Shown: positions 1 through 45,900 of the stretch, piece by piece
Position numbering within the stretch: the stretch's first letter is position 1
How the letters are laid out: the number at the start of each line of letters is the position of its first letter
Assembly: GCA_965202585.1 (NCBI GenBank)
Contig: OZ241826.1
Span: 42,284,001 to 42,348,000, forward strand
DNA length: 64,000 bases
DNA from: Thalia democratica
Lineage: Eukaryota
Reading direction: 5' to 3'
The notes under the pieces: model-generated
Seen by the model: the letters and a program-made list of their open reading frames with translations, nothing else
What the model was told of the DNA's origin: nothing
Databases searched by the model: none
Translations under genes and position numbers: made by a program

Positions 1-386
1 CCATTTAGGTTTGAAAGTTTTACTACTCTGCTTCAAGATGCAAATCATTTTTTTCTCAACTAAAATTTAATCACGTTTGTAAGTTTACCAACAAAATATA
101 AGTTTCAAGGCTAGCAATACCAAAAACAACAGGTACTTTGTTTTTGGTTGAATTTCGTTACTAAACTTTGTAACTTTAAAAACTTTCAGTAAAGGTTTTT
201 ATTTCATTTTGCAGGTTAATTTGAAACAAAAACAACAACAGAGTTAGAAGAAGAAACTATTATAACATAACATTGACTAATTTTGTTAAAAAAATATTGT
301 GAAATAAGTAGACTGTTTATTATCTCTTATTCAACATTTCTAGTAAAAAAACTTTTATGATTTACTTTCATGAACAGGCAACTCAC

Positions 387-483
387 TGTGGTACGAGAAC
401 ATGGAGTGAGGAAGGCCGATTTCAGGATGATTCGGGATCATTCCTGGGTGGTATCCGTTCACTCCCGGTTTCATGTAGCTCAT
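387..483 (-). CDS. otx: First coding exon of a second Otx paralogue (Otx-B); the gene continues beyond the window start
   Basis: Minus strand reads ATG AGC TAC ATG AAA CCG GGA GTG AAC GGA TAC... = MSYMKPGVNGYHPGMIPNHPEIGLPHSMFSYH, 17/32 identical to exon 1 of Otx-A ([31 protein letters not shown]). It ends with the same CAC A|gtgagt phase-1 donor and is preceded by the acceptor tttcag|AAG ATG (AG at 487-488). The homeobox is not in the window, so the call rests on N-terminal paralogy. Confidence 0.85.
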
Positions 484-676
484 CTTCTGAAACAGACTCT
501 GATCACTGTGAACAAAATAAACTGTTTTATTATAGTTTTTTTACACCAACATAAAATATGAGTAAGCAAAAGAAGTTTAACACACAAAGTGTTTATATAT
601 AACAAAAATAAAATTGTTTAATTTTTTGTTATGGTGTTTCTTCTATACATAAGTAGTTAAAAACTGTTGAACTTAC

Positions 677-758
677 TTGGGTGAGTTTGGGTAGTTCATT
701 GCTTCAAGCTTAGTTTTTCCAATTAATAATAAAAACAATGTCTACTTAACTAATAGAC
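677..758 (-). other. Putative 5'UTR exon of Otx-B
   Basis: Acceptor ctcttttgcag|G (AG at 759-760) and donor CAA|gtaagt (671-676). The 190-nt intron to coding exon 1 mirrors the 184-nt UTR intron of Otx-A. Confidence 0.5.
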
Positions 759-3700
759 CTGCAAAAGAGTGTTCGATTTAGTACTTTAAAAATTTGTTAA
801 CGTAAAGGCTTTATACTTAGTTAGAAACAAATATCACAGTAAATTCCAAGTATTAAATGCTTAAAACAATTAAAAATCCAAACTATAAATTTACAAGATT
901 GATATTTGATCTCAAGAATTGCAAGTATATATATCGAAAAGTTTTGAAAATAGTATTTTGGTTTCGTTCTTTAGAAATAAGTTTTCACAGAACTTTGGTC
1001 ACTATAAATAGTGTAAGAATTTAAAACAAAATTCTTTTCATTTTTCCTCCTGCTTTTCCGCATTATAACTCAAGTCACCGACTACTTTGTTTCATTGAGC
1101 GTAACATTAATTAGCTGGAAACTTTTTAAGTGCCTCAAAACCTCATTGGCCGGTGTGCCAAGCGAAGTTATCCTCTTTTGAAGGAAGTGGTGACCGCGGC
1201 ATGCTCGGAATTAACAAACTGACTTTCACCACCATTTACTTACATTGTCTGCGCAGTGCTTCGAGCCCCGTTGGGATTTTCGCTTTTAAAAGCTTTTTAA
1301 TTTGTTTAAACAGCGAAACGTGGAAATCAATGGGCTTAGCTCGCCAAAGAAAATCACGCAGTTTCAGTTGAACTTAGCAAGTTTGAAATTTTTGTTGTCT
1401 ATGTGCGAAGTTGTTTTATAGTTGTAGGTTTGGATATTTAAAAAATACTATAAAATCACGATTTTGGTTTTTGAAATGGTCAAGAAAAGCAATAAAATGG
1501 CCCTAAGAGCACGTCTGGAAGAAACAAAAATCACAAAATCAAACCAGAGCAACAATCAAAACAAGTCAAACTGATATCAAGTTCACCAAACACAAAGTTT
1601 ATCACCTCACAACCGACAGCTTTGTCGTGGAAAAATTCATTTTGTAATCGAACGATGATGCGCGTGATCTGCTGGTGCTAATTGACTTCACAGAAAACAA
1701 ATCAAACTTGAGCCAATCGCTTCAAAGCTCCATTACAACGTCCAACCACGCTTTAGGTGCCTCAGGCTACATTCTAGTGCTTTGATTATTTCGCCTGATG
1801 GTAGCACGCATAAGCTCTTAATTACAAATTTGTTATCTGCTCGGCATCGAAATTCTTTTTACTAAGTGACCGGTTTAACAGATAGGTTGGATTTTGTTGT
1901 GCAAAATATTTTTTTCTGCTTTTTACCTGTGCAGTTTTAAACTAAGAGATGTCCACTAACTTACGATAAGAAAGATTTGACAAAGTATCGAAAGTTTAAG
2001 ACAATTTATAAAAAATCCATATCATAAGGTTTATAGTTTAGTAATTCAAATGATGTCATAGGTATTTGAATGTGGTCAGCATTGGAAAATTAATTTTCAG
2101 TTTTGCATATTTTAGTGTATAAGCCTCGAAGTCACATTCCAAAAACCAAAACGTTACTGATACATTTTGTAAATTTACCAAAACGAAAAACTAACAGCTC
2201 CGAAAATTCTACCAGAAAGTAAAATTAGTTCCACTTATTTTAAAAACACAGGAAACAGCCTTTTACGACAAGTTTATCTTGAAAAGCAAGCGGGTCGCCG
2301 CTTTGAACTGTGGCGAGTGACAACCGAAAACAAAGGTCGGGCAGATAGGCCCAGCGTTTCAGTCGTCTCGCTTATGCGCCGCGGAGACAGCAGAAAAAGT
2401 GGTCGATATTATCGGCTTTTGATGTTGACAGTTGTGAACTCTTTGTATAAACATTGTTTATTAAACACATGAACAACTTGACTTGTTGGAGAATTTAAAG
2501 GAAAGCGAAATTGTTTTAACCCGTTTTGTTAAAGCTTGAGTGAATAAGGGTGGTAGATTATAAAATATAGGTATAAGAAAACTATTGAACTACTTAAAAG
2601 CTTATGAATAAACAATGTAATTATATATCTTTGAATCATCATATTGCTTATTTCACTTTAAATTTAAACCTTAAATTAACAAATTCAACAACTCTTTTCT
2701 AAAGTACTGACAATAAAATTTTTACAAAGCAACAGTCTTTGTTTACATGTTTTAACAAAAACTGTATTATTTAGATAATATTGTAATATAATAAAGACAC
2801 AAACCCATTATTCCTAGTTTAATTTTGTATAATGGCTATATACAAAGAAAAAACACGTTTGATATGAAAGCATCTTTTTAGAAGTTGATTAAATTAGATA
2901 AAACTTGCGTAAAATTTAAAACAAAACTTTGTTAGATGTATTAAATTGGTTCTACAGTTTTTAGTTAAAAAGAACCATACCGTTGGAAACAAACCCTGAC
3001 CCTTTTTAAACAAAGAAAAAAGAAAAAAGTAACAAAATGGCGTCTGGGCGCTCAAGCGGCCAACTGAGTTGAATCGATCGAAAATACAAACAAATTTTGC
3101 GCAGCATGTAAGCCGATTAAAGATGCACTTTGTTTACCAAACTTCATGCTAAATCATTTTCACTTTTTCTTTCAGCTTTTTACGGGAGCTAGCATGGATG
3201 GATGTTTGTTTTTTTATTTCTTAACTAAGTTTCCTAAAGCTAGACGGTTTTTACCTTGCTTAAAACAAAAAAAAACATAATTAACATTGGTAAAATAAGA
3301 TCAGTTAAACTAAATAAAACTGTTAAACTACTTATAAAGAATGTCTTGATTTAAAACTAAGTTTTTTTTAAATTTAGAACATATAACCAAGCCTTTTATA
3401 TTGATGTTATTAAAAAAACTTAAACTTAAAAGTGTTCGTTGTTATTCTAAAATATCCTGTATAGTTGTATATTTAATTAGTGTTTTTGGAAAAAAAAAAC
3501 TATATTATTTTACAACTGAATACAAATAAAATATGCTATTTATTAATAAATGAATTTCACTAAATCTATTGAAAAACATAACTCAATAAACAGAAAACAA
3601 ACAACATTCGAAAAAGTTAATATAGCTTTGTTTTTTCTATCTACTTAAACTTAAATACTATTGAGTGTTTCCAAACTATATTTAAACATAAGCTGAATTA

Positions 3701-9700: not shown

Positions 9701-12700
9701 TAAATTGTTGCTTATTAACTTAAAGCATTATTACAGCGTTTTTTGCTGTAGTGTTTGATATATAAGACACAAAAAGTATATATATTAAAAAATACACTTA
9801 AGAATAATAGTAATCAATTTTTTTCGTAACAAATAAACTGTAAATAAATCAATAAAACATAAACTGGATCTAACTTTAAATTTTCCTTTAAAAACAAAAT
9901 GCAGATGAAAATATTATGCTTTGTCTTACAACAATTTTAATAAATAAAGTCGACTTACTGAAGCATCCTTTCTGTAATACATTCAGATTAAAACTATTTT
10001 CACTAATTAAATTTTATTGCAAACTAACAGTTTTGTCACATTCAAACGACTTTGATTGATCGTTGGGTTGGCGGTGACCCGCAGACGGGCGGCGTCGCCA
10101 GCAGTGACGTTGCCTAGCAACCAAAACAAGCGTCCTGCCGACGAGCAGCTAATTGGTGCACTTCAAAATGCAACTTCCGCGCTTCTTCCGTCTTTTGTTT
10201 ACGACGAGCGACGACGGCGGCGAGATGAGAATATCGCAAACAATTCAGTTTTGTTTGGAGGCAAACAGCAGCTAAGATGTAGCGAGTCTTAACAGCGGAT
10301 CAGCGATCGAGCGAAATTGCTTTAATTGGCCGGGACCTTTCATGTGCCCGCTTGATAATATACATCAGTCTGCGATGGTTAATTTCTAAATATAGACGTG
10401 TTTGGTTGCGAAACAAACGGATTAATTGCTTCGTGTTTCTAATTTCGTGTGCTTCGTAGAGCAAGTCATGGAGTCACGATTCCTTGTTGGCTCGTGTTTA
10501 CTGTAAACCCGAGTCTTTTCTTTGAACGTCAGTGGTGGTTTTGTTTGTTTGCTACAATTTCGAGGTACATGCGCTGATTTGCAGAGCAACACGAGGGTAG
10601 ATTGGTAAATTAGATTTCGTGATGTTAGTGGTGGATGGAGTCAATAAAATGTCATCTAAAATGTTTTCCCTAAATCGAATGCTGTAAATTTATTTGTTTT
10701 TGTTAGCAAAAAGGAAAAATAAAGTAAGTAAGACAGGCAGTTGATAGTTTTGTATTAATGTTTGTCCTATAAACTTTTATTATTAAAATATTTTCATAGA
10801 AAAAAACTTAATTTTTTTTAACTTTGTATTTAAGTAAACTACTTGGTAATAGCTGAACGTGGCTTTCACACTTGATTTAATATAATTGAATATAATAAGA
10901 AAACAACTCGCAAATAAGACAGTTTAATTTGGGAAAACAAGCCCTTAAAGAATGCACAAAGAACAAAATTGCGTCGCTCATTTCGGCTATCAGTTGCCCT
11001 TGAAAAGACAAATTGTAATAGGATTTAGATTCAAATCAAAAGGACTTTCAACTGTAAGGCAACACTGTTTGTGGCAAGGTTGAATGTTTACTAGTTCACT
11101 TTGTTTAACACTTAGATTGGTCGAAGATAAGCTAAACTAGAAACAAATAAACCTTTTGATGGGTAAGTACTGAAAATAACCCTCTTTGCAACTGCTACTA
11201 AACATTTTAGTACTCAGCTTTAAATAGAAACGATTTACAGATGGATATTATTTACTTACATAGGGTGCTTAAGCCCACAGCTGTTAAAAATATTCAATCA
11301 GTTCAGTACGTCTTAAGTGAAGTATTAAACTTATGCAGGTTAAAGTTTTTAACCAGATTAAATCTTATCTTGGGAAGTGGAACAATCTTTGGTATATTAG
11401 CATATTCAGGAAAACCGCTTTGTCAGCTTAATTTATTAGCGGTTAGTTTTTATACTTTGAAAACTTAGATAATTAATTTTTAAACAGTTTTATAATAAAA
11501 TTAGAATTCTTTGAAAAATATTGATTATGATAGTTTATGTTCCTCATAAAAATTTTGAAATATAAATAGAAACTTTTACATAGCAATAACAGCAAAAAAA
11601 TAACATAATTAAAAGTAGGTTTTTAAAAACACAGTATCTACTTGAAGACTTAGATTTAAACTATTTGTACAAAACTTTATATAGTTTTAAGAAAAAATAG
11701 TGTTAGATTTTAGCTATTAGTAAGTAAAAAACAAAGTTTATATAGAATTAAAATAAATAATCAGCAATCAATATAGTACGAATCAAAATAAAATTTCAAA
11801 AATTAACCTTTGTTTTTTACTCTTATAAACATAAATGTAAACAAAGTTTCATTTACACGTTTAAAGCAACAACATATTAGAGTATTTTTGTAAACTTATT
11901 TCATAGCTAGTACATACTATAGAACAAAGCTAATTTAACAAATTTAAGATAAGATAAAATAAAACAATTAAAGTTTTAATTTACAACTAATAAAATTAGC
12001 TTTTAAGGTGTTGTCAGATAAAGTGTTCAATATTTGAAAGCAGTTGATTTCTGAGAACTTTTTTTTAACACAATAATGAATCAGTTTCAATAGTTTAGAC
12101 CCAGTACATGATTTTTTATCATTATTATTGATCACTTTAATTACACAAAATGTTTATACAAAGTAAAAAAAGTATTTAATGATCAAAAGTCTTACTATTT
12201 AGCTTATTGATTGCTTACTGCAAATCTATTAGAAAAAGGTACAACGCTTTTATTCAAGCCAATACTTTTTTACACACATACTACTTTTCAAATTTCCTTC
12301 TTCGTAAACATTGTTTTTAATAAAAAATATAAAAGATAAGCTTACTAGAATTTAACGAATGTAATTTATATGAAAAAATTTCGGAAAAAATTACTTTTCA
12401 GAAATTTCATGTGAAAGTATGCAAAAGTGTTGAGAATTTTACAAAATTAATTTAGCCCGCTAACACAACACTAAAACAAGATTTTTCTAACCCGCGTGTT
12501 GACGTTGCCACGGCGACTGCATTGGGGCGGAAGCGCACCGCGAAGTTGTGAAATAAAAAAGCAGTTTGAACAAACGGCACTTGATATGTGGAGTCTGCAG
12601 ACAGGCTGGCGCCATCAATGAAAATTGTTGGTTTTCGCTCAACGCCGAGCTCGGCCACCGACTTCAAACGGCGCGATTTGCCGCAAAACACACTCACGGC

Positions 12701-15700
12701 CGTAATGCACTTTAAAAAGGCGAAGTGTACTGATGTGCACATCTATGTGAATTTCAACGAAAAGTTGGTGGCACCGCAGTTTATATTGTATGTGCGTTTT
12801 GCTTTTGGTTTTAGGTGAATGCTTCGAGCCGTTTGTATGTGAGGCTGTTAAGTTTTTTAAGGCGTTGATTTAAGGGTTTCACGGTGTTTGAAAGCATAAC
12901 GCTAACTAAACATGGAATAAAGAATAAAGTAAAAACAGCAATTTAAGCCTTTAGTGGCAAAAATTAAAAGTTTAAGCACTGTTTAACAAACCATAAAAAA
13001 AAAATTAATGCTAAAAATCAAATTTTTAATTCACAGCAAAAAAATTTCACCTGTATCTATTTATACAAAATGCTGACTGCTTTCCCAATAAATATAATGA
13101 CCAAAGAAGTACCCTAAATAAAAACTAAAATTCTCGGTAAATGCTACATAGTTTTAGTAGAGTTTCAATTAAACTCATTGGTTAAATAACTTAACAATTT
13201 CACTACACCGAGTATGTAGAATTTTTTGTTTAACACTCTTTTTCCTAACATGCTAATTTATGAATGATTTCTCTATACATAATTTATCTAAAATCAGTCA
13301 GTACAATTAATAAAACTTCGTCACTCAAAATAAAACAAAAATAGCGAAAGCAAAAGTTTCAATTGTTGTTTTTAAGGTTTCTGCACAACTATAAAGATCG
13401 TACTTTTTTAAACTAGTGCTTTCTTATTTGCCATATACGCATTAATCTTCTCAAAAAGCTACCTTTGCAAAGAACTACTTAATTAATATTTAAATAATAA
13501 AAAAAAATATTCCTATTGCACATTACACACAAGTTCGTGTTGTTTTTGCTTCACACATCCTCATGGTCGCCGAGCGTGTGAAACTTCCAGCTGAAAAGTC
13601 GGCAGAGTGCGTGGTGTGCGTCCACTTGAAGGGGCTCGAGAGCACTTGAAGTCTCCACCATGTCTGGCCCGCGACACCCTTCCATCAGTCAACCACTTTA
13701 GTTGGCACACGTGGCTTTGACGATTTCGCGTGTTTTGTTCTTTTAATTATCGACGGCCTTTTTGTTTAAATTTTTGCAAGATGCTTTTTTGTTCCTCTGT
13801 TAGAAACTTTGTACGTAAAAAATAAACTTGCTAAATATATAAATTTGTATTTAATATAACATTTTGCAGAAAAATACTAAAACGTTATAAAAATCATACT
13901 TCATGTAATTAACAACGAATTAAAGTTTAAAATAAACTATTTGTTAAACTGATGACCAATAAAAGTTATGTTTAAATATTAGTGTTTCACTTAAGAAAAC
14001 AAGCAAAAACCTGAAAACTATTACAACAGGTTAGGATGATTGTTCAAAAATAGCTTAAAAACTTTTTAAAGTTTAGTGTTTTACGGTTTATTGCGTCAAG
14101 AAGCAGGAAAAACTGATATAAATAGTTTGAAATTTTTATGAACAGACTTTAAGTTACATAAAACCAATCATTATATATAACTAGAGTGTTTTAATTGAAA
14201 AATATTAGTAAAAGCTTATTACTTTTAAGTAAGAATTAATAACACTTTGCTTTTATTAAAAAAACGAAACCAATACCGAACATAAGTATTTTTGTCTTTG
14301 TCCTTTTTAAAAAGCTTAACGGTAAAATTAGTTTAGACAAACTGATTTTGATCCTTATACAGATCGCAAAATTGCAACAAAAAGGAGATTAAAAATTAAA
14401 TTTTTTAAACGAAAAAACAAACAGAGTAATTGATTCATTGGTAATCTCGGGAGATGGATTTATCCGGTTTCCGAGCACTGCATCACCAATTCATCTCATT
14501 AAATTCAAGTTTATCTTGTTTGTTTGCCTGTCTTCTAAATGCTTGCCTGTTTGTTTTTTTTTTTACAAAACTTTTGCAATTTATCAAAAGAGACGTATTC
14601 AGCTAAGCACACAACTTTTTACTAGTTGTAATAATTTTTACCCATGCTACAATAAATTGAACAAGTCTGAATAATGCACTTTGAAATGAGCCCAGGCTCG
14701 TTAGTGATACTATTTGCAGTTAAAACAAAGCCATGTAAAAACCGACTGCAGACAGAATGGAAGGTACAAACAAGCCTCACGTGTATCGGCAGACATTGAG
14801 ATTGATGAGCTTGCGAATGTCACTTTTGGGGATTAATTCTGCACCTTTTTGTGTCAGGGTGTCAAACGCAAAGTGTACTCGTTGAGGGTGATGGATGGCT
14901 TTTAATTGAGAACATCGAAATAAGTTTGTCGGAAAATAGAGGTACACACGGTTTTTGTTTATTGCCATCCAGGCTTACCGATTGCTGGTGCTTTAAAGTT
15001 GCTAACAAGTTTTCTGTACGGGTTTAATTTTGATTGATTTAGTATAAATTTTACTATTAGTTTAATAAATCATTTGTAATTTAATTTGTGAATCCTACAA
15101 TAAATTTAAAGAATTAAAGTTAAAGCTAAACTAAACTTTTAAAGTAGTAAAACAGCAAATGTAACTTAAAACATTTCAATTAAATATTAATTAAAGCAAA
15201 TTTTTTAAACTTTTTAAAACGTTTTAAATTGTCAAATTTCATATTTTTAAAACCTTAAAATAGTTACAGAAAATTATAAATTAAAGGATAGGCTGACCTT
15301 TAATTAGATTCACAGAATACGTATCCAGCACTAATACATAAGTTTTTGATTTTTATATTGCACTGTAATATTTTACAAGCTTTTAACAACTGCTACGAAA
15401 TTTAATTTTAGGCCTATATGCAACTAGAAGCACTTAATATGATAAAAGTAGCTAATCTTGCTATTACTAGTAGTATTTAACTTTGTCACGTATTGATAAT
15501 TGTTTTTAAATTATATTCTAACAATCACCCAAATAAAAAAAAGGTTTTATTTCATTATAAACCAGTTTAAAACGCAAGTAGACTTTTAAAAACAACATAA
15601 TTTTAATATAGAATTTAACACTTGTAGCTACCTATGTTTTAAATCATGTCTAAGCCTAAACTTTACGAGCTTTTACAAAATTTCAGATAGTTTTATCGCC

Positions 15701-18700: not shown

Positions 18701-21700
18701 TTTCCATACCCACATACGCGTGTGTCAACAGGGAATTACAAGGCTAATTCGCGTCCCCACACAATAGAAACTGTTTATTGCATGGAAGCGGTTTTAATCT
18801 CAACTGTTAACTCCCGCGCTGAACATGATATTTGCGCCTTACAGTTTCTCCTTGTCAAAACTTATATTAGTTTGTGCGACCGGTGACTATATGTGCCAGT
18901 GTTTTATGTTTTATGGCTGAACAATACATCAACATTTTGAGTCGGAGCGACAATAAATTCAAAATAGAACTCGACCACAAAAAGTACAAGCGTATTTGAC
19001 TTCATGTTTTTTAATTTTGGTATAAAGTTTTAAATGTAAAACATACTTGAATTTATGGCTAAAACTAGATGCTTGAAAAAAATAAACTGGTTTGTGTAAA
19101 ACTTTTCTCAGCAGGCTTTGAAATTGGTTAAACCACTTTTTAAACAAAAAAATTTTAGAATTATTTTAAGTAGTTTTAATCAGTTGTAAGTTTATAGTAC
19201 TTTGTTCAAAGATGTTTAGTTACAACAAAAATTTTCTAAACATTTATATGTAAACTATCATCACGTATTTTCAACATAAAGTTCTTATGTCAAAACGTAG
19301 AATGTCAAAAATCAAGCATAATGTGACATGATACGCCGTAAAAACCAAAAATGCCTCTAAAAAATCGAATTAAACTGCATACAAGCAAATTAACAATGTT
19401 TTAACACATCCAAGAAGTTTTAAAACTACTTTGCGGTAATCCTAAATGCTTTAATCTGACATTTTACAAATTCATCCTTACTTACTTTTGTTGATAAATA
19501 TATTCAGCAACATAATACAGACATTAAAAGTTTTAAATGTAAGGGTATTCTCTATTTGTTTTTTACTAAACTGTTAATTTAAATAACATTTAAAACGTTA
19601 ACAACACAGTCAATATTGTTAAACAATCTAACAAAATTGTGTATTACTTTAGGCAAACAAAACCAAAGTATTTAAACTAATTGATGTAAAAAAGTCTTGA
19701 TTATTGGAACTTGGAATAATTTTCAATAAAAGTATATTCAAGCACATAGTTTTAGTATGTTAAAAGTTATGTAGAACAAAGCAAGTAAGTATACAATTTT
19801 TAACTTGTATACAAATGTTTAAATAATCACATTACTTTTGGCTTAGACTGCCTTTAAGATCAAAACTAAAAGAATACAAGAAAATTTTTCACATAATTGA
19901 CTAATAATCCAGGCAAATAAATGTTGACTCAGATGATTTAAAAACTTTCTTCCAATTAGAAAAAGTTACACAAAGAATAATCAGCTCGTATTTCAATAGA
20001 CCGTTTGATTGGCTAATCCAATCAATATTCATTGTGGACGGGGCGTACAGTCTGGCTAAACGACCGACATATCAAAGAATACCCATCAACATAAAACCCA
20101 ATCACTTTAGAATTAAATTATTTTTTGCTTGTTGGCCGAACACACAAACAACTGTTTGAATTGCTTTCTAACAAAAACTGGAAACGTGGCAATTTGTTGT
20201 TCTACACCCACTGCGCGCAGTAAGAAAACACGGAAGACCTCATTGTGAGGCACTGCTTTTTATCGACTTCTTTTGTATCCTTCTATTGTGAGAGGCGGCG
20301 CACAATGCAAATTTGTGAAAATAATCCTGACTGACGGGGCAGATCGCAGCAGTGAGGTTTCTATTGGACGCCTTTTCATTTTTGAAAGCTCGATGTTTTT
20401 TTTTTTGCGACGTCAAAAGGCAATCCAGACTGACCGGTTTCAATTTAGTGAGTTTTGTATTTTGTGCAGTTTCTGTAAAAGCTGACTAATTTCTGATTTG
20501 ACGCTTTGAAACGAGATTATGCTTTGGAAGTTATCTTTTGACAGCAGACGTATGAAAATTATTCTGCATGTGTCTACAATGAACACACTTTAAGTGTCGA
20601 TTTGGTAGAGTCTATAGAATTTATAATGTCGTTTCTAACTTTTATTTAAGAAAAATATTTTAAGCTATTAATATTTAGATTTTTGCAGAAATTTTTTAAG
20701 CTATTTAGAATTGTTTTGCCTTACAAAAAAATTTTACACACGTTTAAAATTAAAACAAGCTGCTGTCTATTATAAAGCAAGATGCTCAAGCTTAAGTTAC
20801 AACCTAAATTTTAAGAACTGTAGCAAAAATACTTGTGTAGAAGAACTTTTTAGAAATTATTTTATAAAATTGTACGAAACAAATACAAGAACTTAACACA
20901 AAAAGAAGCTACTAACACTACTTTGTATGATCCAAAATCGCGCCGAATCGGAAAACTTGCAGCTTACAAGCTCCGAATTAACAACAAAACAAGCAACTTG
21001 CTTTCGAAGATCAACCCGCCCAATCTGCAGCTAACAAAAGGCAATTCCGCTAAACTTTCGATGAGAGAGCAGATAATGCCGATCAAGGAGCGGCTGAGAG
21101 TCTTCTAAGCAGAAGCTGGTAGCAGCCGTGCGGGGACGCTTGACATGCTGACTTTGAGCGGGAGCGATTGAAAAGGAAGAAAATAGTAATTTCCTTGATC
21201 CGCCAGCGCGCGGCCCCTTTCAAACGAGCCGACTTAAGAGCAAATGAATTTATGTATTAAAGGCGAAATGAATAATGCAGGCAAATCCCAATTGATCTCT
21301 CGGGCAAACGCTACTTTGTTGCAGGCTCAAAGCTCCGCGGACGGAACTTAGCGGCGTGTCAGGGAAAGAAAATGGATAAATTTTCAAAACGAAAGTTTGA
21401 TTGAAAATAAATGCTGGCATAAAAAAGTTTTAAGAAGAACTTGAAATCGGATTATTGTATCAGCCTATTAGAATTAAAATCAAAATTATCATTCAGCAGT
21501 GGATGTGAGACCTGTGCGTATTAAATTTTCAAATATTTTTTATATTTAAAAAGTCATTGCTTTTTTTACTAATTAAGGTAAAATATATTCAAACATTTCG
21601 AATTATTTTTATTGACTTTTGAACAATTTTTTTTTCTGATACAATTTCTTAAAATTTTGTTTTAATAAAACGAAAAGTTATAAGTTTGTTAATGTTTGAG

Positions 21701-24077: not shown

Positions 24078-24983
24078 TTAAGAAAGTACGTGGCACTCCG
24101 ACGAGTTCGAGTATCCGTTGGTCTGGCTGCCCGACAACTGCGCCCCCTGCTGGTACGGGTAACTCGGTTGCGAGCACGGGAAAGTCCCCTGCTGCTGGGT
24201 GGCGGCCAGTTGAGACTGGGCTGCCATCTGAGAGTGCTGGTGGTGGCGGAAGTAGCCCTGGCTCATCATCTCGTCCACTCCCTGGTAGCCCGTTGGCATG
24301 TTGTAGTTTGCGGCCTGGTCCAAGGCGTTGAAGTAGGCCTGGTGGGCGTAGCTGTGAGGGTAACCCCCCGCGTTCATTTGCCCGCCCTGCATGTACTGGT
24401 GGGCGTTGGAGAACTGGTTCACCGCCGCCGCCAGGTACGGAGAGGTGCTGGTCCCGGAAGCGGAGCTGGACATCCCGTAGGCCGACATCGGTGTTCCTGT
24501 GCTCTCGCCGTTCGAGTTCGGAGAAATGGAAGAGTTGTTCCACATGCCGCTCGATGACTGTGACGTCATAGCCATGTTGGCGCTTCCCTGTTGCTGCATC
24601 ATTCTGATCATGTCGTTCTGCGGGCCGACGGAGGAGCTGGTCGGAGGAGGCGGGGTGAGTTTGCTGGTCCCCATGACTTCCGTTCCCAAGGAGAGCTGCA
24701 CGTTGCTAGGGGAGTTGTTTTGGAGGATCTCGGGGCTGCCGGAGACTTTCATCTGATCCTGCTGGGGTTGGAAATCTAGTTCGAGGCTGTCGGCAGGTTT
24801 GCTGGTTGGCTCGAGCCGACCGATGCTGACCGGCGACACCTGCTGGTTTGTTGCCGGCTTGCTGTGCTGCTGTGGCTGCTTCTCAACCTTCTTCTTGCTG
24901 CTGCTTGCCGCAGCTGACTGTTCCTTTTGCTTTTGCTGCTGCGACTGCTGCCTGCACTTTGCGCGACGGTTCTTGAACCAGAC
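24078..24983 (-). CDS. otx: Otx-A coding exon 4 (recognition helix and C-terminal region)
   Basis: Acceptor ctttcag|GTC TGG TTC AAG AAC; 906 nt open to TAA; Gln/Ser/Pro/Tyr/Met-rich with GC-ending codons. Confidence 0.97.
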   Translation of the reverse strand, partial: VWFKNRRAKCRQQSQQQKQKEQSAAASSSKKKVEKQPQQHSKPATNQQVSPVSIGRLEPTSKPADSLELDFQPQQDQMKVSGSPEILQNNSPSNVQLSLGTEVMGTSKLTPPPPTSSSVGPQNDMIRMMQQQGSANMAMTSQSSSGMWNNSSISPNSNGESTGTPMSAYGMSSSASGTSTSPYLAAAVNQFSNAHQYMQGGQMNAGGYPHSYAHQAYFNALDQAANYNMPTGYQGVDEMMSQGYFRHHQHSQMAAQSQLAATQQQGTFPCSQPSYPYQQGAQLSGSQTNGYSNSSECHVLS

Positions 24984-25621
24984 CTGAAAGTACAATCACT
25001 TTAGTTTGGTGTACTCAAAAATTTCTAATCAGAAATTATGTATTTTTAGTTGTGTTTTAGGTTAAATTATTTCCTTGCTCTAACCTGAACGCGAGATTCC
25101 GGAAGATTTATTTTCAAAGCGACCTCTTCTCTCATGAAAATATCCGGATACCTCGTTTTAGCGAACAACTTCTCGAGAATGTCCAGCTGAGATCTGGTGA
25201 AAGTTGTCCTTTCTCTGCGTTGTTTTCTCGAGTTTCCTGAAAAACAAAAACAGTAATAAAAAATATTCCAATGCTTATGAGAAAACATGATGTTCAAGTA
25301 TTTTTCAAACAAGCAACTCACCGTAAACATGTTGTGGCATGAACGCCATTGTTTTAGCCGCTTGAGCATGCATTCCAGGAAACCTTTGGAAGTAGCAGGC
25401 AGGGTCGTCTGAAGAAAATAAAAATTAAACAACTATGCACTAAACAAATAACAACTTTTAAAACAAATAAAACCTTATAATTTCTTAAAATCAACATGAA
25501 ATTAAGACAAATTAAACAACAACTCACTGTGGTAAGGCACGAGAGGATGGGTGAGCGAGATGTCGGGGTGGTTGAGCGAGAGACCGGTGTATCCGTTCAT
25601 TGCGGGTTTCAAATATGACAT
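24078..25621 (-). CDS. otx: Otx homeobox transcription factor (Otx-A), 4 coding exons: 25621-25528, 25408-25322, 25236-25085, 24983-24078; 412 aa
   Basis: Exon lengths 94+87+152+906=1239 nt join in frame through GT-AG introns of 119, 85 and 101 nt. The homeodomain [48 protein letters not shown]|[13 protein letters not shown] is Otx-type with K50 and has the conserved PRD-class intron between Q46 and V47. N-terminus is MSYLKP. Stop TAA at 24078-24080. Confidence 0.97.
25085..25236 (-). CDS. otx: Otx-A coding exon 3 (homeodomain residues up to Q46)
   Basis: Acceptor tttttgtttttcag|GA, donor CAG|gttaga; encodes [12 protein letters not shown]...PESRVQ. Confidence 0.97.
25322..25408 (-). CDS. otx: Otx-A coding exon 2 ([28 protein letters not shown])
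   Basis: Acceptor ttttcttcag|AC, donor G|gtgagt; 87 nt, phase 1-1, in frame with both neighbours. Confidence 0.9.
25528..25621 (-). CDS. otx: Otx-A coding exon 1 ([31 protein letters not shown])
   Basis: ATG at 25621; upstream acceptor tttgccttcag|G (AG at 25639-25640); donor A|gtgagt, phase 1. Confidence 0.92.
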
Positions 25622-25884: not shown

Positions 25885-28800
25885 CTGAAAAAATATTTAA
25901 ATTATCAACTTGTTCTTTTGAGCTACTTATCAACATAAACAAAACTTAGTAATGATAAAATTCATCTACTGCTGACTATTATATACCAGCAAGAACAATA
26001 ATGAGAAACAAACAAACAAAATATACGGATGCTTTTTCTAATAAAGAAAATGTTGCAACAATACAAAAAATTGAGCAACCTTTTCATTAGATAGCAAAAG
26101 TTAGTTTGTGACGTTTCCACGTTTATTGTCTTTCCTTTGTTAACCATTGTAAAGAAAGTTCTATTCAATGTAAACAACAAAGCAAAAATCAGACAGTGAA
26201 GTAAAACTTTTTAGAAATTTTTGTTTCAAACTTCCGCCTAATTTGCGACAAAATGCATTTTAGTATTTCGCTGTCTCATTTTTTTTAGTTTAGATTATTG
26301 CTTTTTTGTTTCCTTAATTTGTTTATAACTTTATTTAATTATTTGTAATACTATTTAAATTAATAGCTAGTATAACGTTGTAAAAATTAATAAGCTACTA
26401 ATTAATATTGAATTATTTTTCTTAGTTTACTTTAGATCAACTTTAATTGTTTTCTATAGTTGTTACTTCTTTGTCGTATTAAAAAAACAGTTTAGTTTAT
26501 AAAAATCTAAAAGAAAATTAAAACTGCAAAACTTGCATCATGATGTTCAAGAAAAATCTAAATGACTCTAACAGTGATACTAATTAATGGTGGCTTATAA
26601 CAATGAACAAATGTGACAGTTTTTTGAATGCACATTAAACCGATCGATTAGCGAGTATTTAGAAATTATACTTTGAACTGCGTCGTACTTTGGAGTCTGT
26701 CATAAAATGGCACTTTACCCGAGTTAATCTTGCTTAATTTGCAAAAAATAAAGCACGATTCTTAAAAGTTTTGGGCCGAACTGACGGTGTTTGTTTTTGC
26801 ACTAGATTATGATTATCTCGTTCTGTGTGTTTTGGTTAAAATACTTCCAAAAAAAGTTTTTTATGTTGTATGTAGAAAAATATTTACCAACAGCTAGTTT
26901 AAAAGCTGCTTGCTTGATGAAAATTTAATACACAGAATGCCACTTAATGCGAGAACTATGCGAGAACAAAATGAACAAAAGCTTAAATTAAGACTATTAC
27001 AAGTTAATGCTTTTAAAGCTCTAAGAAAAGTTTGCTTTCTAAACTGTTGATCTCGCATTAATAAAGATTTTCTGATGCTTGAGCTAGCAAATCTTTTAAG
27101 TCCGCAAAGTCAATGGAAGATAATAGCTTAAAGACAGTTCGCATTGAAGCGGACATATTTACTTTGCTGGGGATTTAAAAAAGATTTCTTTGGCTTATAT
27201 TTAGCTAAATCTAAAGCTAATGGCTTAGTAGTAAAGCATGTTCTGTAGTATTATAATTCAATGAACTGCATTTTTTCATTGTATAACTTTAAAGCTCGAT
27301 AGTTTTACTTGTATACGTCATTTCAAGTTGAATGTTGTAAAACGAAAACACTAACAAAAACCGCAGTATGATATTTTACAGGTAAAAAGCACAGTTTTTC
27401 AAAATACTTCGTGTTTAAGAGTTTCATCTACACCTGCGCGCTCGCATTGAAGTAGCAAACGGCAAACGGTTAATTCCCTGCTGTTCCCTTTGTGCTGTAA
27501 CAAGGCCAAAGCCAGGCAACACCTGGCCAGTTTCTAACTTTTATGTTGCAAATAGCAGAGGTTTCTGTCTTCGCTTCATAAACGGCCAAATACTTAAACG
27601 CATACAAGTTCGAATTCTTGTTTGTCTAATTTGTTCACATCTCGAAAGCTTCAACCCGTTTTTCTGTTTACACCTGCCTCAAAGGCTACCTTGAACGTGC
27701 CAATTTTTTAGTTTCAACAGCTATTTGCTGACCTAAGAACCTAATTTTACACGAAAACTTCAACGAGCTAGTCTAAAGTATCAATAACAAAACACGAAAA
27801 ACCAACTTTTTTTCAAAGCTTGACCCGAAAATACTCAGCTTTGTTATTCCACTTCCTAAATAAAATAAATCGAAAACAACAAGTTTTGAGTTGATGAGAA
27901 AAGAGCCTTTTCACACTGACAATCAGCCTTGTTTTACAGACAATATTTCCGCACACAATGCCACCCAGCAGCGTTCGCGTGTCGCTTCCTCTTTAACTTG
28001 CCCAGGGTCGACCTTCTACCGACAAACGAACAAGTTAGGTGAAGGCCAGTCTGCTGGTGAAAACGAAACGCAACTCCAAGAATAGAGTCGGCGCCACGCA
28101 TAAGGGCGAAGCGTTAATTAGGAAGCAACAAAAACGACCACACATGGAGCGGTAGCAGCGGCACGCGAATATACTTTTGAGTCTTTTTAAAGTGATTTTT
28201 TGCCGCTGTGACGTAATAATGCTTCGTTTGATATGTCATAAAAACTAATAAAAGTACGCTTTTTAGCATTTTAAGCTTGTTACTGACATAAAAATAGTTT
28301 TATTATCTTATTTGCAGCACCATGTAGAATTGGCAGTTTGAAAAAAAAAACTTTTTCAGCGAGCAAGAATTAAAAGGGTGGATTTTAGTAAATTAGGGAA
28401 AAAAAAAAACTTGATTTTGAAAACAAAAAAAATTTGTTGCGAAAAACGTGCGAAGACTGTAAAATAAAAATGATAAAGAAAAAGTTGGCAAATAAAAAAT
28501 TTAAGCAAACACGTTCGCTCTACTTTACATGAATAAACCAGGGAATATTTGTCGAAAGAATAAACAAATGTTTGTTTCGTGTATTCCACTTCAAAGAGGC
28601 CGCTTCACGCGTTTCTACTTTCATTCTGGCATTTCCCACCCTCAAGGTTGAAAGAACAAGAAATATAAATTATGCAACGAGACCATCGGCTTTTTTTCCT
28701 TTATAAAAGGTCACGGAAACTTTCGAACTTTTTTTTAATATTCTTTTGAGTTATTTGAGGTAATAAAGCTTTGATATACATTGAGACTTTGGTGCAAAAG

Positions 28801-31800: not shown

Positions 31801-32161
31801 AAAATCACACGGCTGGAAAGAATTATAATCATGACAGCAAACAAACCGTAAGCAATTATCTCGATTTCGAACGGTGAGGGATGGTACAGTGTTCGCGAAA
31901 CAAATGCAAATGTTTAAATTTAAACTGATTTTTAGCAACTGCAGCATCCAAACTCGATTATGCGAGTTTACTAAATACCGCTAATTCGATCTTACGGCGA
32001 ATCTGCGATTTTTCACGCTCTTAATTCGCTCAGCAGCTAACTACCGTCGTATTTCGCGGTGGTCCGAACCTCAAATGAAATTAATTGCAAATCGCCGTGA
32101 CCGCTCTCAATCAAAATTTTTATTTCATCTCGTGATAATTTACGGAAACTAGCCGCCCTCC

Positions 32162-32250
32162 TTGGCAACCAGCTGTTGCTAGCAACCGCCCCGTCGCTTT
32201 CTGGTTGCGAGCGATGACGCGGTTGTCAGGTTTCTGGTTGCCTGGCGACC
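32162..32250. promoter_or_regulatory. Candidate RFX X-box cluster upstream of Otx-A
   Basis: TTGGCAACC (32162), the perfect palindrome GTTGCTAGCAAC (32175-32186) and GGTTGCCTGGCGACC (32236-32250) in a CpG-rich island. Confidence 0.5.
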
Positions 32251-35200: not shown

Positions 35201-38200
35201 ATAATAAAAATTTTAAAGTCGGCTGTTTGCTGTTTTCTCGAGGGTAGATAAGGCTTGGACATCAAAAAACTATATTGCTGACAGTTTTTAGAATAAAAAA
35301 TACTTAAATACTATTATTTATTTGTTCATAAATTGTGGTTTTTTTGTAAAATAAACTAAAAACTTAACTATATAAAGGTAAATACGGCATAATCAATTTC
35401 ATACTTTATTAAAGTCAATTACAAGTAACAAAATGTTTAACTTGGATTGTAAGTTAAATTTTTCTTTTAAGTTTAAACACTAAAATTTTACAAACTTCTC
35501 TAGAATCTTGTAAAACTTAAACTTTTAGTTCGCTAATTTTAATGTTGACAAAATAAGTAAAAAAAAGCGTTTCATGCAAACAAAGGTATCGATCACAACT
35601 TGTAGTTTTTGAGTATATTTTGGTTTTTAATTTTCAACATCATAAGCTTTAATCTGTTTATTGTTTAAAAAACATAACATCTTTTTTATTTCAAAGCTGC
35701 TTTGATTAATTAATTCAGCGTGATAAACCTAACAAGAAGCCCACAACTCAACTTTTTTCTAATTAATCAGACAGCCGTAAAACCGGCAAAGTGTTTACAG
35801 TAAATTGCCTTTCATGATTTGACACGTCGCTATATAAAGCGCTTTAATTTTAGCACAATGTAGTAGTCATAACCGTTTGTTAGGACTCGAACGCAGTAGG
35901 GGGGCTTGAAAGTTGGAAACAGTGAACAATTGAAGTCAAAAGGATTAAAATGGCCATTAATTTTCAGTCATATACTTCTATTGATAGACCGAAACTTTCA
36001 TTGAGTTTTGTGTTGCTTGCGTCAAGATTTGTATGCAGAAAAAACGTCTTTTTAAGCTGCAAAAATACTCAAAACTAAACATCTTAAATAGTGTTAAGCT
36101 GTAAATACGTACATTATTTATCTAACAGTATGGATTTTTAAGTTTCAAAATATAAAAATTCAAACTATTTTGTGACTTGTTTGAGAAAACTATTTGCTAT
36201 GAATTTTACAACACGAAACTCTTACTCAATTTTTACAGTAGCTTTCTTTTGTAGCTACTTGAAACAATTATGAAAATGTCAGATTTAAAAGTTGCATCGC
36301 ACGCGACTATATCCACTTAAAACTATTAAAAAATGCTCGCAACTTAAAAGTGGATCTTTTAAAGGTTATTTCGCGGACCAATTATAAAAAGTAAAACTTC
36401 AAACAAGCTTCATCTATTATGACTACTCAAAAACAAGGCTCCTTATACATCACTTCATGAGTGTGTCATTTTACAAATCATTTAATTGCAACTATTCTTT
36501 GTACAAATTATAAGTTCCTGATGTTTCGAACCATATTATTATAATTTTTTCCAAACGTTATATTTTTTGAACTGACTTTATGTAATCGGCTTTTAATTTA
36601 AAGTTAACATAAAAAGTCCAAAGCGCTTGTTTTGGTTGCTTAGCAACGTGTAACTACTAGCAACGCCACCAGTCTGCGGGTCACAGCCAGCACAACTATC
36701 AATCAACGTCTCTCGAAAGTGACAAGATTCTTGTTTTTGTGACAAGCATGTTTATTGAGTAATCGCACTTTTGGGACTACACCAGTCTATTTTTGTTTAC
36801 GGTTAAATAAAGTTAATTAAACGAAGTATGGTATCGGTTCCAGAGTCGTACGTAATTATTTCCAGTCATTTTAAATTAGTTCTCATTAAGTTTAAAAAAA
36901 GATTTTTGGTAAAAATGAAAAAGATCATTACCAAACTAATTAGAAAAAACACAATTATACTCGCTCTAAAGTTAAAGTTGTTAAGATTAAAGATATTTTA
37001 AAAAATAATAGATAACTTATTTTTCGTGAAAAAATAGCAGGTTATGAAAAATAAGTTATTCTATATAATAATGTAAAGTCAAAAATATCAGTTAAAATAA
37101 ATCATAAAAAATCTGCTAGTATATCAAGCAATTCTAAAAAAAAGTACAACAAAACTTAAATGAAAGCTATCTTGACAATGACTAGTTTAAAAAATTCAAT
37201 TAATTTAAAATTAAAATACTAAAAATATTAAATTCTGCTTAAAAATTTGGCCCTAACTAAAATTTTAAATCTAATAATTTCTATAAATATTCAAAGCAGT
37301 AACATAAAACATGTTTATGATAACTATTAACAAAAATTAAGCTAACATACATTTTATACCTTGTGATTTTTACAATGTACACCATATTTTGTAAACCATT
37401 ACTGATAGCTTTGAAATCAACTTGTAACAATTTTTTTTAAACTAAACTATATTTACAAAAATTTGCATCCTCACTATCTTAGCAAATCAAGCAAAGCAAC
37501 TTTAAAAAAAAACTCACATCAACGAGTACTGGAAAGCAACGAACACACATAGCATGAGAATCGCAGCAGATGCCGCCGTAATGAGCAGCGCAGGCGGCAG
37601 GAGATCTGTTAAATCTCGTTGAGAGGATTAAGAGGTTGAGCATCGTTGAATGCATGGGAGATACTTCGGTTGGCGCGCAACGGTGACCCCTGAGATGTGA
37701 CGCGCGGAATCCCGTTAAAATTGGATTCGAAGCGCAAGATAGCTTTGTCCAGGGATCGCGCGGTTGGAGTAAACAACAAAGGATTGGATTACACGCTCGC
37801 AAAAAATTCCATGTTTTTAGTCTCAGTGTTGAAAATCAATGCGCTCTTGGTTTTCATATTCAGCAGAGTTTTCGGGCAAATTAAGTTTTCTTTGAGTACA
37901 AAACAAAATCTTATTTTGAATACGTCACTTCGAAATGCGCTTCCTTTAACTTTACTGGCTCATGAATGAAATGATTTATTCAAAACAGTTGGGCTAAATT
38001 AGCAGTGTGACTTTAATCCTTTTTATTGATATCTGGTAAAATCCGCAGTGACGCTAAAAAGCTTTTAGGGTGTAAAATCAATTTTACATTTTCAAAACTA
38101 AAAACTTTTCAGCTGAAACTGAAATTAAGCTTTGTGAACCAGTAAGATCTCTTAACATATTTAACTAATCAAGTCTTATTTGTTCTAAGTGCGGAAATAA

Positions 38201-42976: not shown

Positions 42977-45900
42977 CTGATAATATTGACAAAATTAATA
43001 AAAACAAATAGCTACTTTAAAATTTCAGCGTATGCCTAATACTTTAATGTTTTTAACAAACTCGCTCTTTTTAAATTCGCTTAAAACGTGATACTAGTTA
43101 TGAAAATAGGTATAAGAAGTATGTTATATGTGAACTACTCTGGATTGGTCAAAATTTCCGAAGAATAATTAAATTACTATAATTTTTAGTTAAAAAAATA
43201 TTAAAAGAAAAAAACCTGAATCTCAAACAAGTATAAAAAAAACTAAATTAAATATCAAGACTAATCTAACCAAAATTATTTTTTTTATTAAAAGCGCAAT
43301 TAAATCGATATTATAGAAACTGACTCTTCCTCCTTCTCGTCGATCCGGTGTATTATTTCGTTCTTCTCGTTGACAAGCGCGATCTTCTTCATGATGAGCT
43401 CCTCCTCCTTCTGCTTCATCGCGTCGCTTTTCATGTGCTCTGTGTGTATTGAGGTACGATAATAAAAAGTATTTGAAAAAATTTTGACGAAATGATGTAA
43501 AATAAAAAAACGGAATACAATTACCATTTGTTACAGGTTTTTGCTGTTCTAAGTCAATTTCATTATTGCAGCAAGATGACTAAATGGAATTAAAATTAAT
43601 CTCACAAGTGATACTGTTATTAAAAAAAAATTATTATACATAAACAAAAGATTTATTCAACAAAATCATATATAATGTGACTTTTTCGACCTACTTTACT
43701 CACTTGAAAAAATAAAAAAACAAAAATTTAAAAAATATATAGTCACTAAGCAATCTAAACAAAATTACAAGCGTTCAATAGTGTGTATGTTATGAAACAA
43801 CATTTTATATTTTCAATGACTTCACGGAATTGACGCTAGTCATAAACTGGAATATCACCCAATAAATCTAAAGAAGTTTTAATGTAAGTGTCAAAATATA
43901 AATGACGCAAATAAACAGTACCAGTACCTGTAAAATGAAGTATCATTTAATTAAATTGTTTGTTTTCCTGTGGCTTTGAAGTATAAACTCAATTAATATA
44001 ATTAATGTGCATAAAAGTTACAGTTTTTTTGTTCTATATAAAAGTTTTTAGACCTTTAATATTATAAAAACTCACTCTATGACGAAATGTTACTTTTTAA
44101 ACATCAATTAAAACCACACCTCAAGATATATAAACTTTTTAGCAAATATTCTAACAAATTTCAAACTCCTTACTTTTGTCGAACTATAATAAAGATATGA
44201 CTAAACATACTAAAAATCAACCTTTAAAAACTTATTGGAATACCAAGACACTTTTAGTCGTAATTTAAAGCACGAAAACATTTAAACCTGTACAAAATTG
44301 AGAGATTTTCTAATTAACCATAGCAACTTAAAAGTACTAAAACCCTCTATCGTTCAAAGAAAGCCGCGTGCAAACCAAATCTTTCTGAAATTCAAAGCAA
44401 AACACAAAGTTCCGGTGTAATTACAAAATATGAATTAATTGCAAATCAACATATTGCAGGTGCTTACGGTGACCACCCTGTGTTGCGACTAGCAGCTGTT
44501 TAATCGATTACTTATAATTGACCTTGATCGTCAATATCAACCCCACTAATCAAATGTGCTTCCGCGTCTAGTCACTAGTTTCAAAAGTCGCGCATTTTTG
44601 ATGCAATTCGTTTTGTAATAAAAACTGAAATACTGAGTTGCATTTGTTTAGCATAGACATTACAGTTTATTTTTAATCAGAGCAAAGGTGTCATATCGGT
44701 TGTTGTGAATGAAATAAAAAGAAGAAAGTAAATATAAGCTAATATAGGTATAATGTAAGTATAAGTTTATAAAGAATTTAAGTTTTTTTTTTTGTGAAAA
44801 AAAATATTTTTATATCAGAAATAATAATTTTGTTTTGAAGCAACAAAATCAAACCTTTCAAAACTGCTAACAATTATTAAAAATTGTAAAAGTTATTGAT
44901 TTATGCTAAAAAGAGCTAATTTATAAAATCAAAAAAATATTGAACATTTTTTTATTAATTACGATTTTACATTAAATATAACTAGTTACGGACTTTTAAA
45001 AAAAATTTATTTCACGGTTAAAAGTTAATTTTCCGTCTAACAACCATTGCAAAATTTAGTTAATTTAACTTTAACCTAGCCAATACATTATGCGATCTAT
45101 CTCTTTAATGCAGCAGTAGAATCTGAACATTTATGATTGAACAGGCAAAAATGTCCATTTATCCAACTAAAACACACAATGTAAAATGAAATAAAAGATT
45201 GTGAATCGAAATAGCAGGTGTATGGTTAAGGCCACCCAATGCAAATTGCGATATTATTGTGATTTATTAATGACATTGTCACGTAATACAGGTGCCTGCA
45301 CTATCAACAACTGAGATTCACACATAAATATTCATAAAAGAGCAAAATGCATTGTTTAATTTGTTTCGCGGCCAAAAACTTGAAATAGCTTAGTTATAAA
45401 CTTGTACACTTCTGTTTAAATTTTAACTTTGCATTCAAGTGGGCAAATAAGACTTATTTGCGTCAGAAAATGCATTAAAAACTGAACATCCACATATATT
45501 ATGTTTTCGCACAACATTGTTATCTTATTCTGGTACAGCTAACCAAAACAAAACTCAAAATGACATAAAGGTTATTAAATTGCACTTATCTGATCACAAA
45601 TGTTTTGTCAGAGTGTTTTTTAATTTAATTTGTTCAATTTAATACACCATGTTTCGTTATCTTCGCACAACGACGCTTTTAAACGTCAACAAACTTATTA
45701 AAACGCGGTTATCTGATCAAAAATGTTTTGTTAACGCGGGTAAGTAACATTTTGTTTAATTAACTCTTGAACTTTGCTAACATTTTAGTATTTTCACTCT
45801 CACAGAGAGTTTAATTAACTTTTGAATGGTAATATTTACGCCGTCAAAACTGTCATGTAAGCAGTGGTAATAAGTGTTACCGATTGTTATTCTGAAAACA

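Follow-up and report, generated by a model that had tools for sequence, protein, structure and literature searches.

The window, that is, the whole 64,000-nt stretch of DNA analysed here, carries on its minus strand one complete Otx gene (Otx-A) and, about 23.3 kb away at the window start, the 5' exons of a second one (Otx-B), whose 3' part lies beyond the window. Assembly of Otx-A from its four exons gives a 412-aa protein; its stop codon ends at 24078, and the ATG at position 483 is 23.6 kb downstream in the same orientation. Also on the minus strand, some 17 kb upstream of Otx-A, is the 3' end of a gene that encodes a bMERB domain of the EHBP/MICAL type. Coordinates are collected in Table 1.

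Table 1. Features of the Otx-A/Otx-B locus (window positions)
Feature	Position	Strand	Description
Otx-B exon 1	677..749	-	5' UTR, start codon 699-697, MNYPNSP and first 2 bases of the next codon
Otx-B intron 1	506..676	-	171 nt, gtaagt...cacag, phase 2
Otx-B exon 2	387..505	-	119 nt, (N)DQSLFQK then MSYMKPGVNGYHPGMIPNHPEIGLPHSMFSYH, phase-1 end
Otx-B intron 2, first 386 nt	1..386	-	opens gtgagt, continues past the window edge
Otx-A coding exon 1	25528..25621	-	phase-1 end; paralogous to the canonical segment of Otx-B exon 2
Otx-A coding exon 2	25322..25408	-	model agrees with full-length A-type transcript protein P0002
Otx-A coding exon 3	25085..25236	-	first 46 homeodomain residues; Pfam Homeodomain, E = 3.1e-14
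Otx-A coding exon 4	24078..24983	-	remainder of homeodomain, C-terminal region, stop codon
ORF with bMERB domain	43300..43527	-	E = 6.7e-6, above gathering score
~100-nt element, copy 1	36624..36725	+	81% identical to the reverse complement of copy 2
~100-nt element, copy 2	10033..10132	-	

Read on the minus strand, positions 483-387 run ATG AGC TAC ATG AAA CCG ... TCG TAC CAC A, followed by gtgagt, and translate into the 32 residues MSYMKPGVNGYHPGMIPNHPEIGLPHSMFSYH, an Otx-type N-terminus closed by an A/gtgagt donor. A tblastn search of the whole window in six frames with this peptide returned one significant non-self match, at 25621-25529 (-) in Otx-A exon 1 (17/32 identical residues, E = 7e-9), the next best match having E = 0.7. 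The two N-terminal exons share their final 15 nt (TACCACA/gtgagttg) and end in phase 1, different codons specify 9 of the 17 residues that they have in common, and 56/93 nucleotides are identical. The peptide also aligns with the N-termini of Ciona, Phallusia and the proteins P0008 and P0011, with a motif (M)SY[LM]K...NG...HP...Y before the phase-1 intron. A preliminary description of this DNA had already reported the 17/32 identity, the identical CAC A/gtgagt phase-1 end, the differing codons (Ser TCA/AGC, Tyr TAT/TAC, Pro CCC/CCG) and the location 23.6 kb downstream of the Otx-A stop in the same orientation, and our values agree on each point. It had also taken 387-483 for the exon and treated it as exon 1; the segment and its peptide are real, but by the spliced RNA contigs and the transcript L001 the exon runs from 387 to 505, and it is most likely coding exon 2, the start codon lying upstream at 699 (L001 and L005).

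Splicing of this exon was read from two minus-strand Logan contigs, X1 (259 nt) and X2 (245 nt), of one 2016 marine metatranscriptome sample. Both join exon 1 (724-677 in X1, 711-677 in X2) to 505-383 across a GT..AG intron and then continue for 87 nt off-window; the 505/677 junction, which skips 171 nt and appears as CT..AC on the plus strand (GT..AG on the minus strand), is present in the two RNA contigs and in L001. The contigs part from the genome at 383-387 and go on with ...GACCCGAGTCAATACTTTCCAAGGTTTCC, encoding DPSQYFPRFP; the 87-nt overhang starts (GTGA)CCCGAGTCAATACTTTCCAAGGTTTCC, encodes H and, across the junction, S-D-P-S-Q-Y-F-P-R-F-P, has been read as DPSQYFPRFPG, and has its counterpart at the Otx-A exon 1/2 junction, whose splice (25409-25527 skipped) is likewise present in an X1 RNA contig. 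Since X1 and X2 both skip the 171 nt and carry the off-window 87 nt, splicing takes place on either side of the exon, and the 3' partner lies off-window. The mapping of RNA junctions that the preliminary description had called for thus gives 724-677 spliced to 505-387, followed by an off-window exon that parallels Otx-A exon 2. No exon-2-like coding sequence was found in 1-386 (tblastn of P0004 gave no match below 382), no Otx-B homeobox exon lies within the 64-kb window, and genomic Logan contigs reach past the window start by tens of bases.

As a separate observation, window positions 1162-1344, which precede the Otx-B 5' exon by about 400 nt, are matched at ~93% by a 200-nt unspliced contig of the X2 RNA library. 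This contig overlies a GC-rich patch with a CCAAT motif and may represent an alternative 5' exon, a separate transcript from upstream or carried-over DNA.

Used as a protein query, Otx-A exon 4 recovered two types of protein, all marine: the A-type P0001 and P0002, and a second type comprising P0004 (455 aa) and P0005 (460 aa); P0002, P0004 and P0005 come from JGI marine metatranscriptomes, and P0001 from an ENA assembly contig. P0004 opens with MNYPNSPNDQSLFQK, goes on with the 32 residues of the window (32/32, P0004 residues 16-47) and then with NDPSQYFPRFPG, and its residues 83-139 match the Pfam Homeodomain (E = 4.6e-21), with the sequence VWFKNRRAK and Lys50. P0004 and P0005 both end ...DSTYKFTLQ, which fits the Otx-tail pattern W/Y-K-F-x-[VL]-[LQ] and corresponds to WKFQVL in ascidian Otx. 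L001, the JGI transcript of 2121 nt that encodes P0004, was compared with the spliced genomic sequence (749-677 + 505-387) and matches it at 190/192 positions, both differences being synonymous; its bases 1-73 equal window 749-677 (73/73). From this match, L001 is the mRNA of Otx-B, either of this species or of a very close sibling species. The link from exon to homeobox is made by metatranscriptome contigs of unassigned species, which can be chimeric, and none of the species-labelled RNA-seq runs searched contains the Otx-B exon. The homeobox of the B transcript differs from that of Otx-A in three homeodomain residues (ERLF, REDV, KISL) and in about 20% of its nucleotides.

One further protein, P0003 (201 aa, source 'merc'), is identical to the A-type P0002 over its first ~100 residues and has a B-type C-terminus with YKFTLQ as its final residues. 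Two explanations are a chimeric assembly across a block conserved between A and B and, in another species, gene conversion between the paralogues.

The first AUG of the L001 mRNA corresponds to window 699-697, in the upstream mini-exon, and is preceded by an in-frame stop. Between L001 and L005 the 5' UTRs carry indels, while from the AUG onward the extension shows only synonymous changes, its 15 amino acids being identical; on this pattern, translation of Otx-B most likely starts at 699, in a mini-exon that adds 15 residues. A-type transcripts begin at the canonical MSYLK, which makes the extension a feature of B alone. The ancestral Otx initiator is probably the Met at 483, now internal. Position 749 is a lower bound on the transcript start, so the Otx-B 5' end is given as at least 749.

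Some Otx genes, for example in sea urchins, use alternative first exons, and the segment might accordingly be taken for an alternative 5' exon of Otx-A, or for that of an unrelated downstream gene resembling the Otx N-terminus. Transcripts join it to a homeobox distinct from that of Otx-A, and an exon that follows the Otx-A stop codon in the same orientation cannot feed into Otx-A; we therefore give this explanation practically no weight.

Since the homeobox of Otx-B falls outside the window, we looked for it in genomic reads, aligning DNA runs to the window's Otx-A at 80% likeness and reading paralogous copies from mismatches and loose ends. Runs X3 and X4 belong to the window's own organism (organism A) and match the window elsewhere at 99-100%, e.g. 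over 534 nt with 0 differences. In these two runs, homeobox exon 3 is covered by exactly two contig types beyond Otx-A itself. The B-type is represented by a 104-nt contig and two allelic 157-nt contigs, which carry the letters specific to L001 (G at 25117, C at 25118), and a separate exon-4 contig continues with 30/30 identity to L001 498-527, encoding the B-specific AAANRKSAAE. These exon-3 letters and this exon-4 continuation show that the organism's DNA contains B-type homeobox exons; their depth is about 100, against 68-110 for Otx-A, as for a normal single-copy sequence. L001 is not letter-identical to the sequenced individual: over the 5' half of exon 3, differences from Otx-A number 10-12 in the genomic B-type alleles and 16 in L001. 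Heterozygosity is very high in this genome, with allelic DNA contigs differing at 15/198 sites at 737-934, and may account for that mismatch. The homeobox intron between residues 46 and 47 (RVQ and VWF) was seen directly in Otx-A and in the ascidian-like locus L002, and indirectly in Otx-B, where the match of the genomic B-type contig stops at 25082-25083 and gives way to unrelated intron-like sequence. In organism B, exon 3 and the beginning of exon 4 occur on a single contig, separated by a short spacer.

These data bear on whether the segment belongs to a working gene. At the window edge a single Otx-B coding match is visible, with no more coding sequence in the 386 nt that follow it, as would be the case for an orphan pseudo-exon, the relic of a dead Otx duplicate; the exon is, however, spliced at both ends in RNA contigs, its full-length transcript is open and carries a homeodomain, B orthologues show a dN/dS of about 0.10 and only synonymous changes in the 15-aa extension, and B-type homeobox exons occur in genomic reads, which together make a pseudo-exon very unlikely. 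The preliminary description had proposed a second Otx gene here and had held a pseudo-exon, with no homeobox exons following or with a disrupted frame and no transcripts, against its own proposal. Instead, spliced transcripts were found with an open frame of 455 aa, L001/P0004 carries a complete Otx-type homeodomain, and the organism's DNA reads contain the B-type homeobox exons. A somewhat less remote alternative is that the gene is intact in the sampled relatives or population, and that the present assembly has it truncated, rearranged or mis-assembled on the downstream side, leaving the exon unconnected to a homeobox: the linkage of exon and homeobox does fall beyond position 1, and L001 and the genomic B-type exon 3 differ by several letters. 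B-type exons 3 and 4 are nevertheless found in contigs of the same organism at a depth comparable to that of Otx-A, with an exact continuation into B-specific sequence, and we consider a downstream defect improbable. The reading of the segment as part of an intact Otx-B is thus retained.

To explore the age of the two genes, we used Nei-Gojobori estimates. The B orthologues L001 and L005 gave dN 0.028 and dS 0.274 (dN/dS about 0.10), and the A orthologues, window Otx-A and L004, dN 0.088 and dS about 1.2 (dN/dS about 0.07); between A and B, dN was 0.40 and dS about 1.3, which is saturated, and dN/dS is not meaningful for that pair. At the sequence level, these values indicate that Otx-A and Otx-B are both under purifying selection and that the A/B duplication predates the split of several related species in the marine samples. 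Identity between A and B is 53% in the N-terminal exon and about 58% over the whole protein. The two also part at the C-terminus, where Otx-A, like its orthologue P0002, is without the Otx tail and ends SECHVLS.

Within the C-terminal region, we also observed a block (Otx-A 24235-24575 against L001 906-1264 and L005 901-1083) whose DNA identity of 76-85% equals that of the homeobox.

In a genome this heterozygous, Otx-B might be suspected of being a haplotype left uncollapsed or a copy made recently from Otx-A. Against such an artefact stand the 53% and ~58% identities, the saturated dS, an orthologue of B in other samples (P0005), its private N-terminal extension and different C-terminus, and 23 kb between the genes that, except for one 100-nt element, are unlike the Otx-A surroundings; its probability is negligible. 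The view taken in the preliminary description, of an old duplication under purifying selection and not a recent copy or an assembly artefact, is borne out by the same divergence values and by the dN/dS of the B orthologues.

Two IQ-TREE trees (LG+C20) of 24 and 17 rows, Oikopleura and cnidarian sequences not being among them, gave the same topology: (stolidobranch Otx), ((Ciona, Phallusia, Clavelina), (P0008, (P0011, ((window Otx-A, P0002), (P0004, P0005))))). The clade of P0011, A and B has a support of 100/99 and lies within tunicate Otx, apart from vertebrate OTX/CRX and echinoderm Otx; with all three types in one clade nested in tunicate Otx, the expansion is lineage-specific, as the preliminary description, which had proposed such a tree, supposed. 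Its position beside phlebobranchs and aplousobranchs is that expected for thaliaceans. (Otx-A, P0002) and (P0004, P0005) are sisters with 92-97% bootstrap (92/90 in one estimate); the alternative duplication orders A+C and B+C, where C denotes the P0011-like type, are not rejected (p-AU about 0.09). Coding GC3 of Otx-A and Otx-B is 0.73-0.77 and their CDS GC 0.57-0.58, against a window average of ~30% GC. P0008 was considered as a further paralogue and rejected: with a GC3 of 0.25 against 0.73-0.77 and a homeobox DNA 75% identical to Otx-A, it very likely comes from a different organism. L002, the sole metagenome-contig match obtained with P0004, is an ascidian-like Otx locus of 44% GC and does not come from this organism.

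The other contig type over homeobox exon 3 is a contig of 3.3-3.9 kb in X3, X4 and X5, which aligns at 25083-25225 and differs from Otx-A at 23 positions in 143 nt, with the same exon boundaries. After ...ctacag its exon 3 begins with GATCGCGC, encoding G-S-R-K-Q, where A and B have an additional Asn (G-N-S-R-K-Q); P0011 shares this Asn-less arrangement, and its transcript L003 reads GGATCGCGGAAACAA. From this extra contig type with its GSRKQ start, the genome contains a third, P0011-type Otx-class homeobox exon, and the pelagic tunicate probably carries a third Otx copy, as judged from these reads. The possibility that P0011 is a pre-duplication orthologue from another species is weakened by the P0011-like exon 3 in the DNA of both organisms, A and B. 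GC3 of P0011/L003 is 0.52 versus 0.73-0.77 in A and B, and the L003 transcript itself may derive from another species.

Outside the coding exons, tblastn, Rfam and tRNA scans between Otx-A and Otx-B detected no Otx fragments, tRNAs or Rfam matches, and Rfam and tRNA scans of the entire window gave no match. Comparison of the window with itself revealed the ~100-nt element listed in Table 1, whose two copies, in opposite orientations, each sit 9-11 kb upstream of one Otx gene and both contain an X-box-like palindrome, GTTGCTnnGCAAC; apart from this one element, the 23 kb of intergenic DNA have no similarity to the surroundings of Otx-A. The placement hints at putative regulatory DNA duplicated along with the gene, a dispersed repeat being the other possibility in view of the opposite orientation. 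That the Otx copies share one enhancer landscape, as had been suggested in the preliminary description, is speculation.

Several GC-rich islands lie on both sides of Otx-A (2241-2440, 10001-10380, 12461-12760, 13521-13760, 21001-21380, 27901-28180, 30321-30820 and 32101-32360), with a peak GC of 0.54-0.62 in 120-nt windows against 22-33% GC in the intergenic DNA; tblastn found no coding similarity in them, and each is a candidate conserved non-coding element or unannotated exon. An imperfect palindrome of 460 nt, 69% self-complementary, occupies 57286-57743, in the region of the upstream Ehbp1-like gene.

Taken together, we conclude that the 97-nt segment is very probably the canonical N-terminal part of exon 2 of an intact and transcribed tandem Otx gene with a K50 paired-type homeobox. 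Otx-B would lie head-to-tail, ~23.3 kb downstream of the four-exon Otx-A (24078-25621), which would itself be downstream of the bMERB-domain (Ehbp1-like) gene. Its transcription would begin at position 749 or above and its translation at 699 in the mini-exon, and the remainder, beyond window position 1, would comprise an Otx-A-exon-2-like exon, predicted to open (A/G)TGACCCGAGTCAATAC in phase 1, and then two homeobox exons. The product of ~455 aa would be an ordinary Otx transcription factor, expected from its family to bind TAATCC-type sites via Lys50 and, by family membership, to have an anterior or neural patterning role. The two genes would have arisen by tandem duplication in the pelagic-tunicate (thaliacean-like) lineage and both have been kept by purifying selection.

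A broader reading, which we put forward tentatively and to which we give slightly less than even weight, is that of a three-gene tandem Otx cluster (A, B and a P0011-like C) produced by two successive thaliacean duplications, linked to Ehbp1, with a regulatory element kept and the termini diverged. At least one upstream regulatory element, represented by the 100-nt pair at 36.6 kb and 10.1 kb, would then have been retained separately with each gene, and the termini of the paralogues would have diverged by loss of the Otx tail in A and gain of the N-terminal extension in B. If true, such a cluster would be a compact chordate system for the study of sub- or neofunctionalisation of a head-patterning gene, and might possibly be tied to the unusual calymmocyte-driven embryogenesis of salps.

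Two Otx 'in-paralogs', Otx.a and Otx.b, are known from the transcriptome of the salp Thalia democratica (GenBank PX826397 and PX826398; PLoS Biol 2026, PMC12994792), where a homeodomain tree assigned them to a duplication specific to the lineage and Otx.b was expressed in dorsal calymmocytes (PMC12994792); two Otx genes in a salp are thus already published, which the background given in the preliminary description had left out. In the text of PMC12994792 duplication is not mentioned, 'genome' occurs in the reference list only, and no genomic arrangement is given. As with Otx.a and Otx.b, two expressed paralogues form here a clade nested in tunicate Otx, and Otx-A and Otx-B are likely the published pair. 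New here are the head-to-tail linkage of the two genes, 23 kb apart and beside an Ehbp1-like gene, and the exon model with its extra 5' coding mini-exon, together with the finding that A has lost the Otx tail and the evidence for a probable third copy. The locus supplies a genomic basis for the Otx in-paralogs of salp transcriptomes, and its gene model permits paralogue-specific probes, reporters and regulatory comparisons. In kind it is ordinary, a developmental homeobox gene duplicated in tandem within one lineage, and it is an increment to what is known: a pelagic tunicate keeps two, probably three, intact expressed Otx copies, A and B being probably adjacent.

Otx belongs to the core genes of anterior and neural patterning and occurs as a single copy in ascidians and amphioxus. 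Contrary to ascidians, with their one Otx gene, the organism studied here has at least two and probably three. The Otx of Ciona intestinalis, C. savignyi, Phallusia, Clavelina, Styela and Herdmania shares with the present genes the N-terminal MSYLK motif, the YFQR motif and the K50 homeodomain; Ciona, Phallusia and Clavelina Otx stand next to the A+B+P0011 clade in the tree, as its sister group among ascidians, and the ascidian-like L002 locus has the same four-coding-exon layout as Otx-A. The C-terminal tail is likewise shared with Otx-B (WKFQVL in ascidians, YKFTLQ in Otx-B) and is lost in Otx-A (SECHVLS), and, relative to ascidian Otx, Otx-B has gained the 15-aa N-terminal extension from an extra exon. 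In vertebrates, EHBP1 and OTX1 are neighbours; similarly, a bMERB-domain gene of EHBP/MICAL type lies upstream of Otx-A on the same strand, which, from the one domain fragment compared, is consistent with Ehbp1. Oikopleura dioica has three otx genes and Nematostella vectensis three clustered otx genes in tandem; these too are lineage-specific expansions, but independent events in other lineages.
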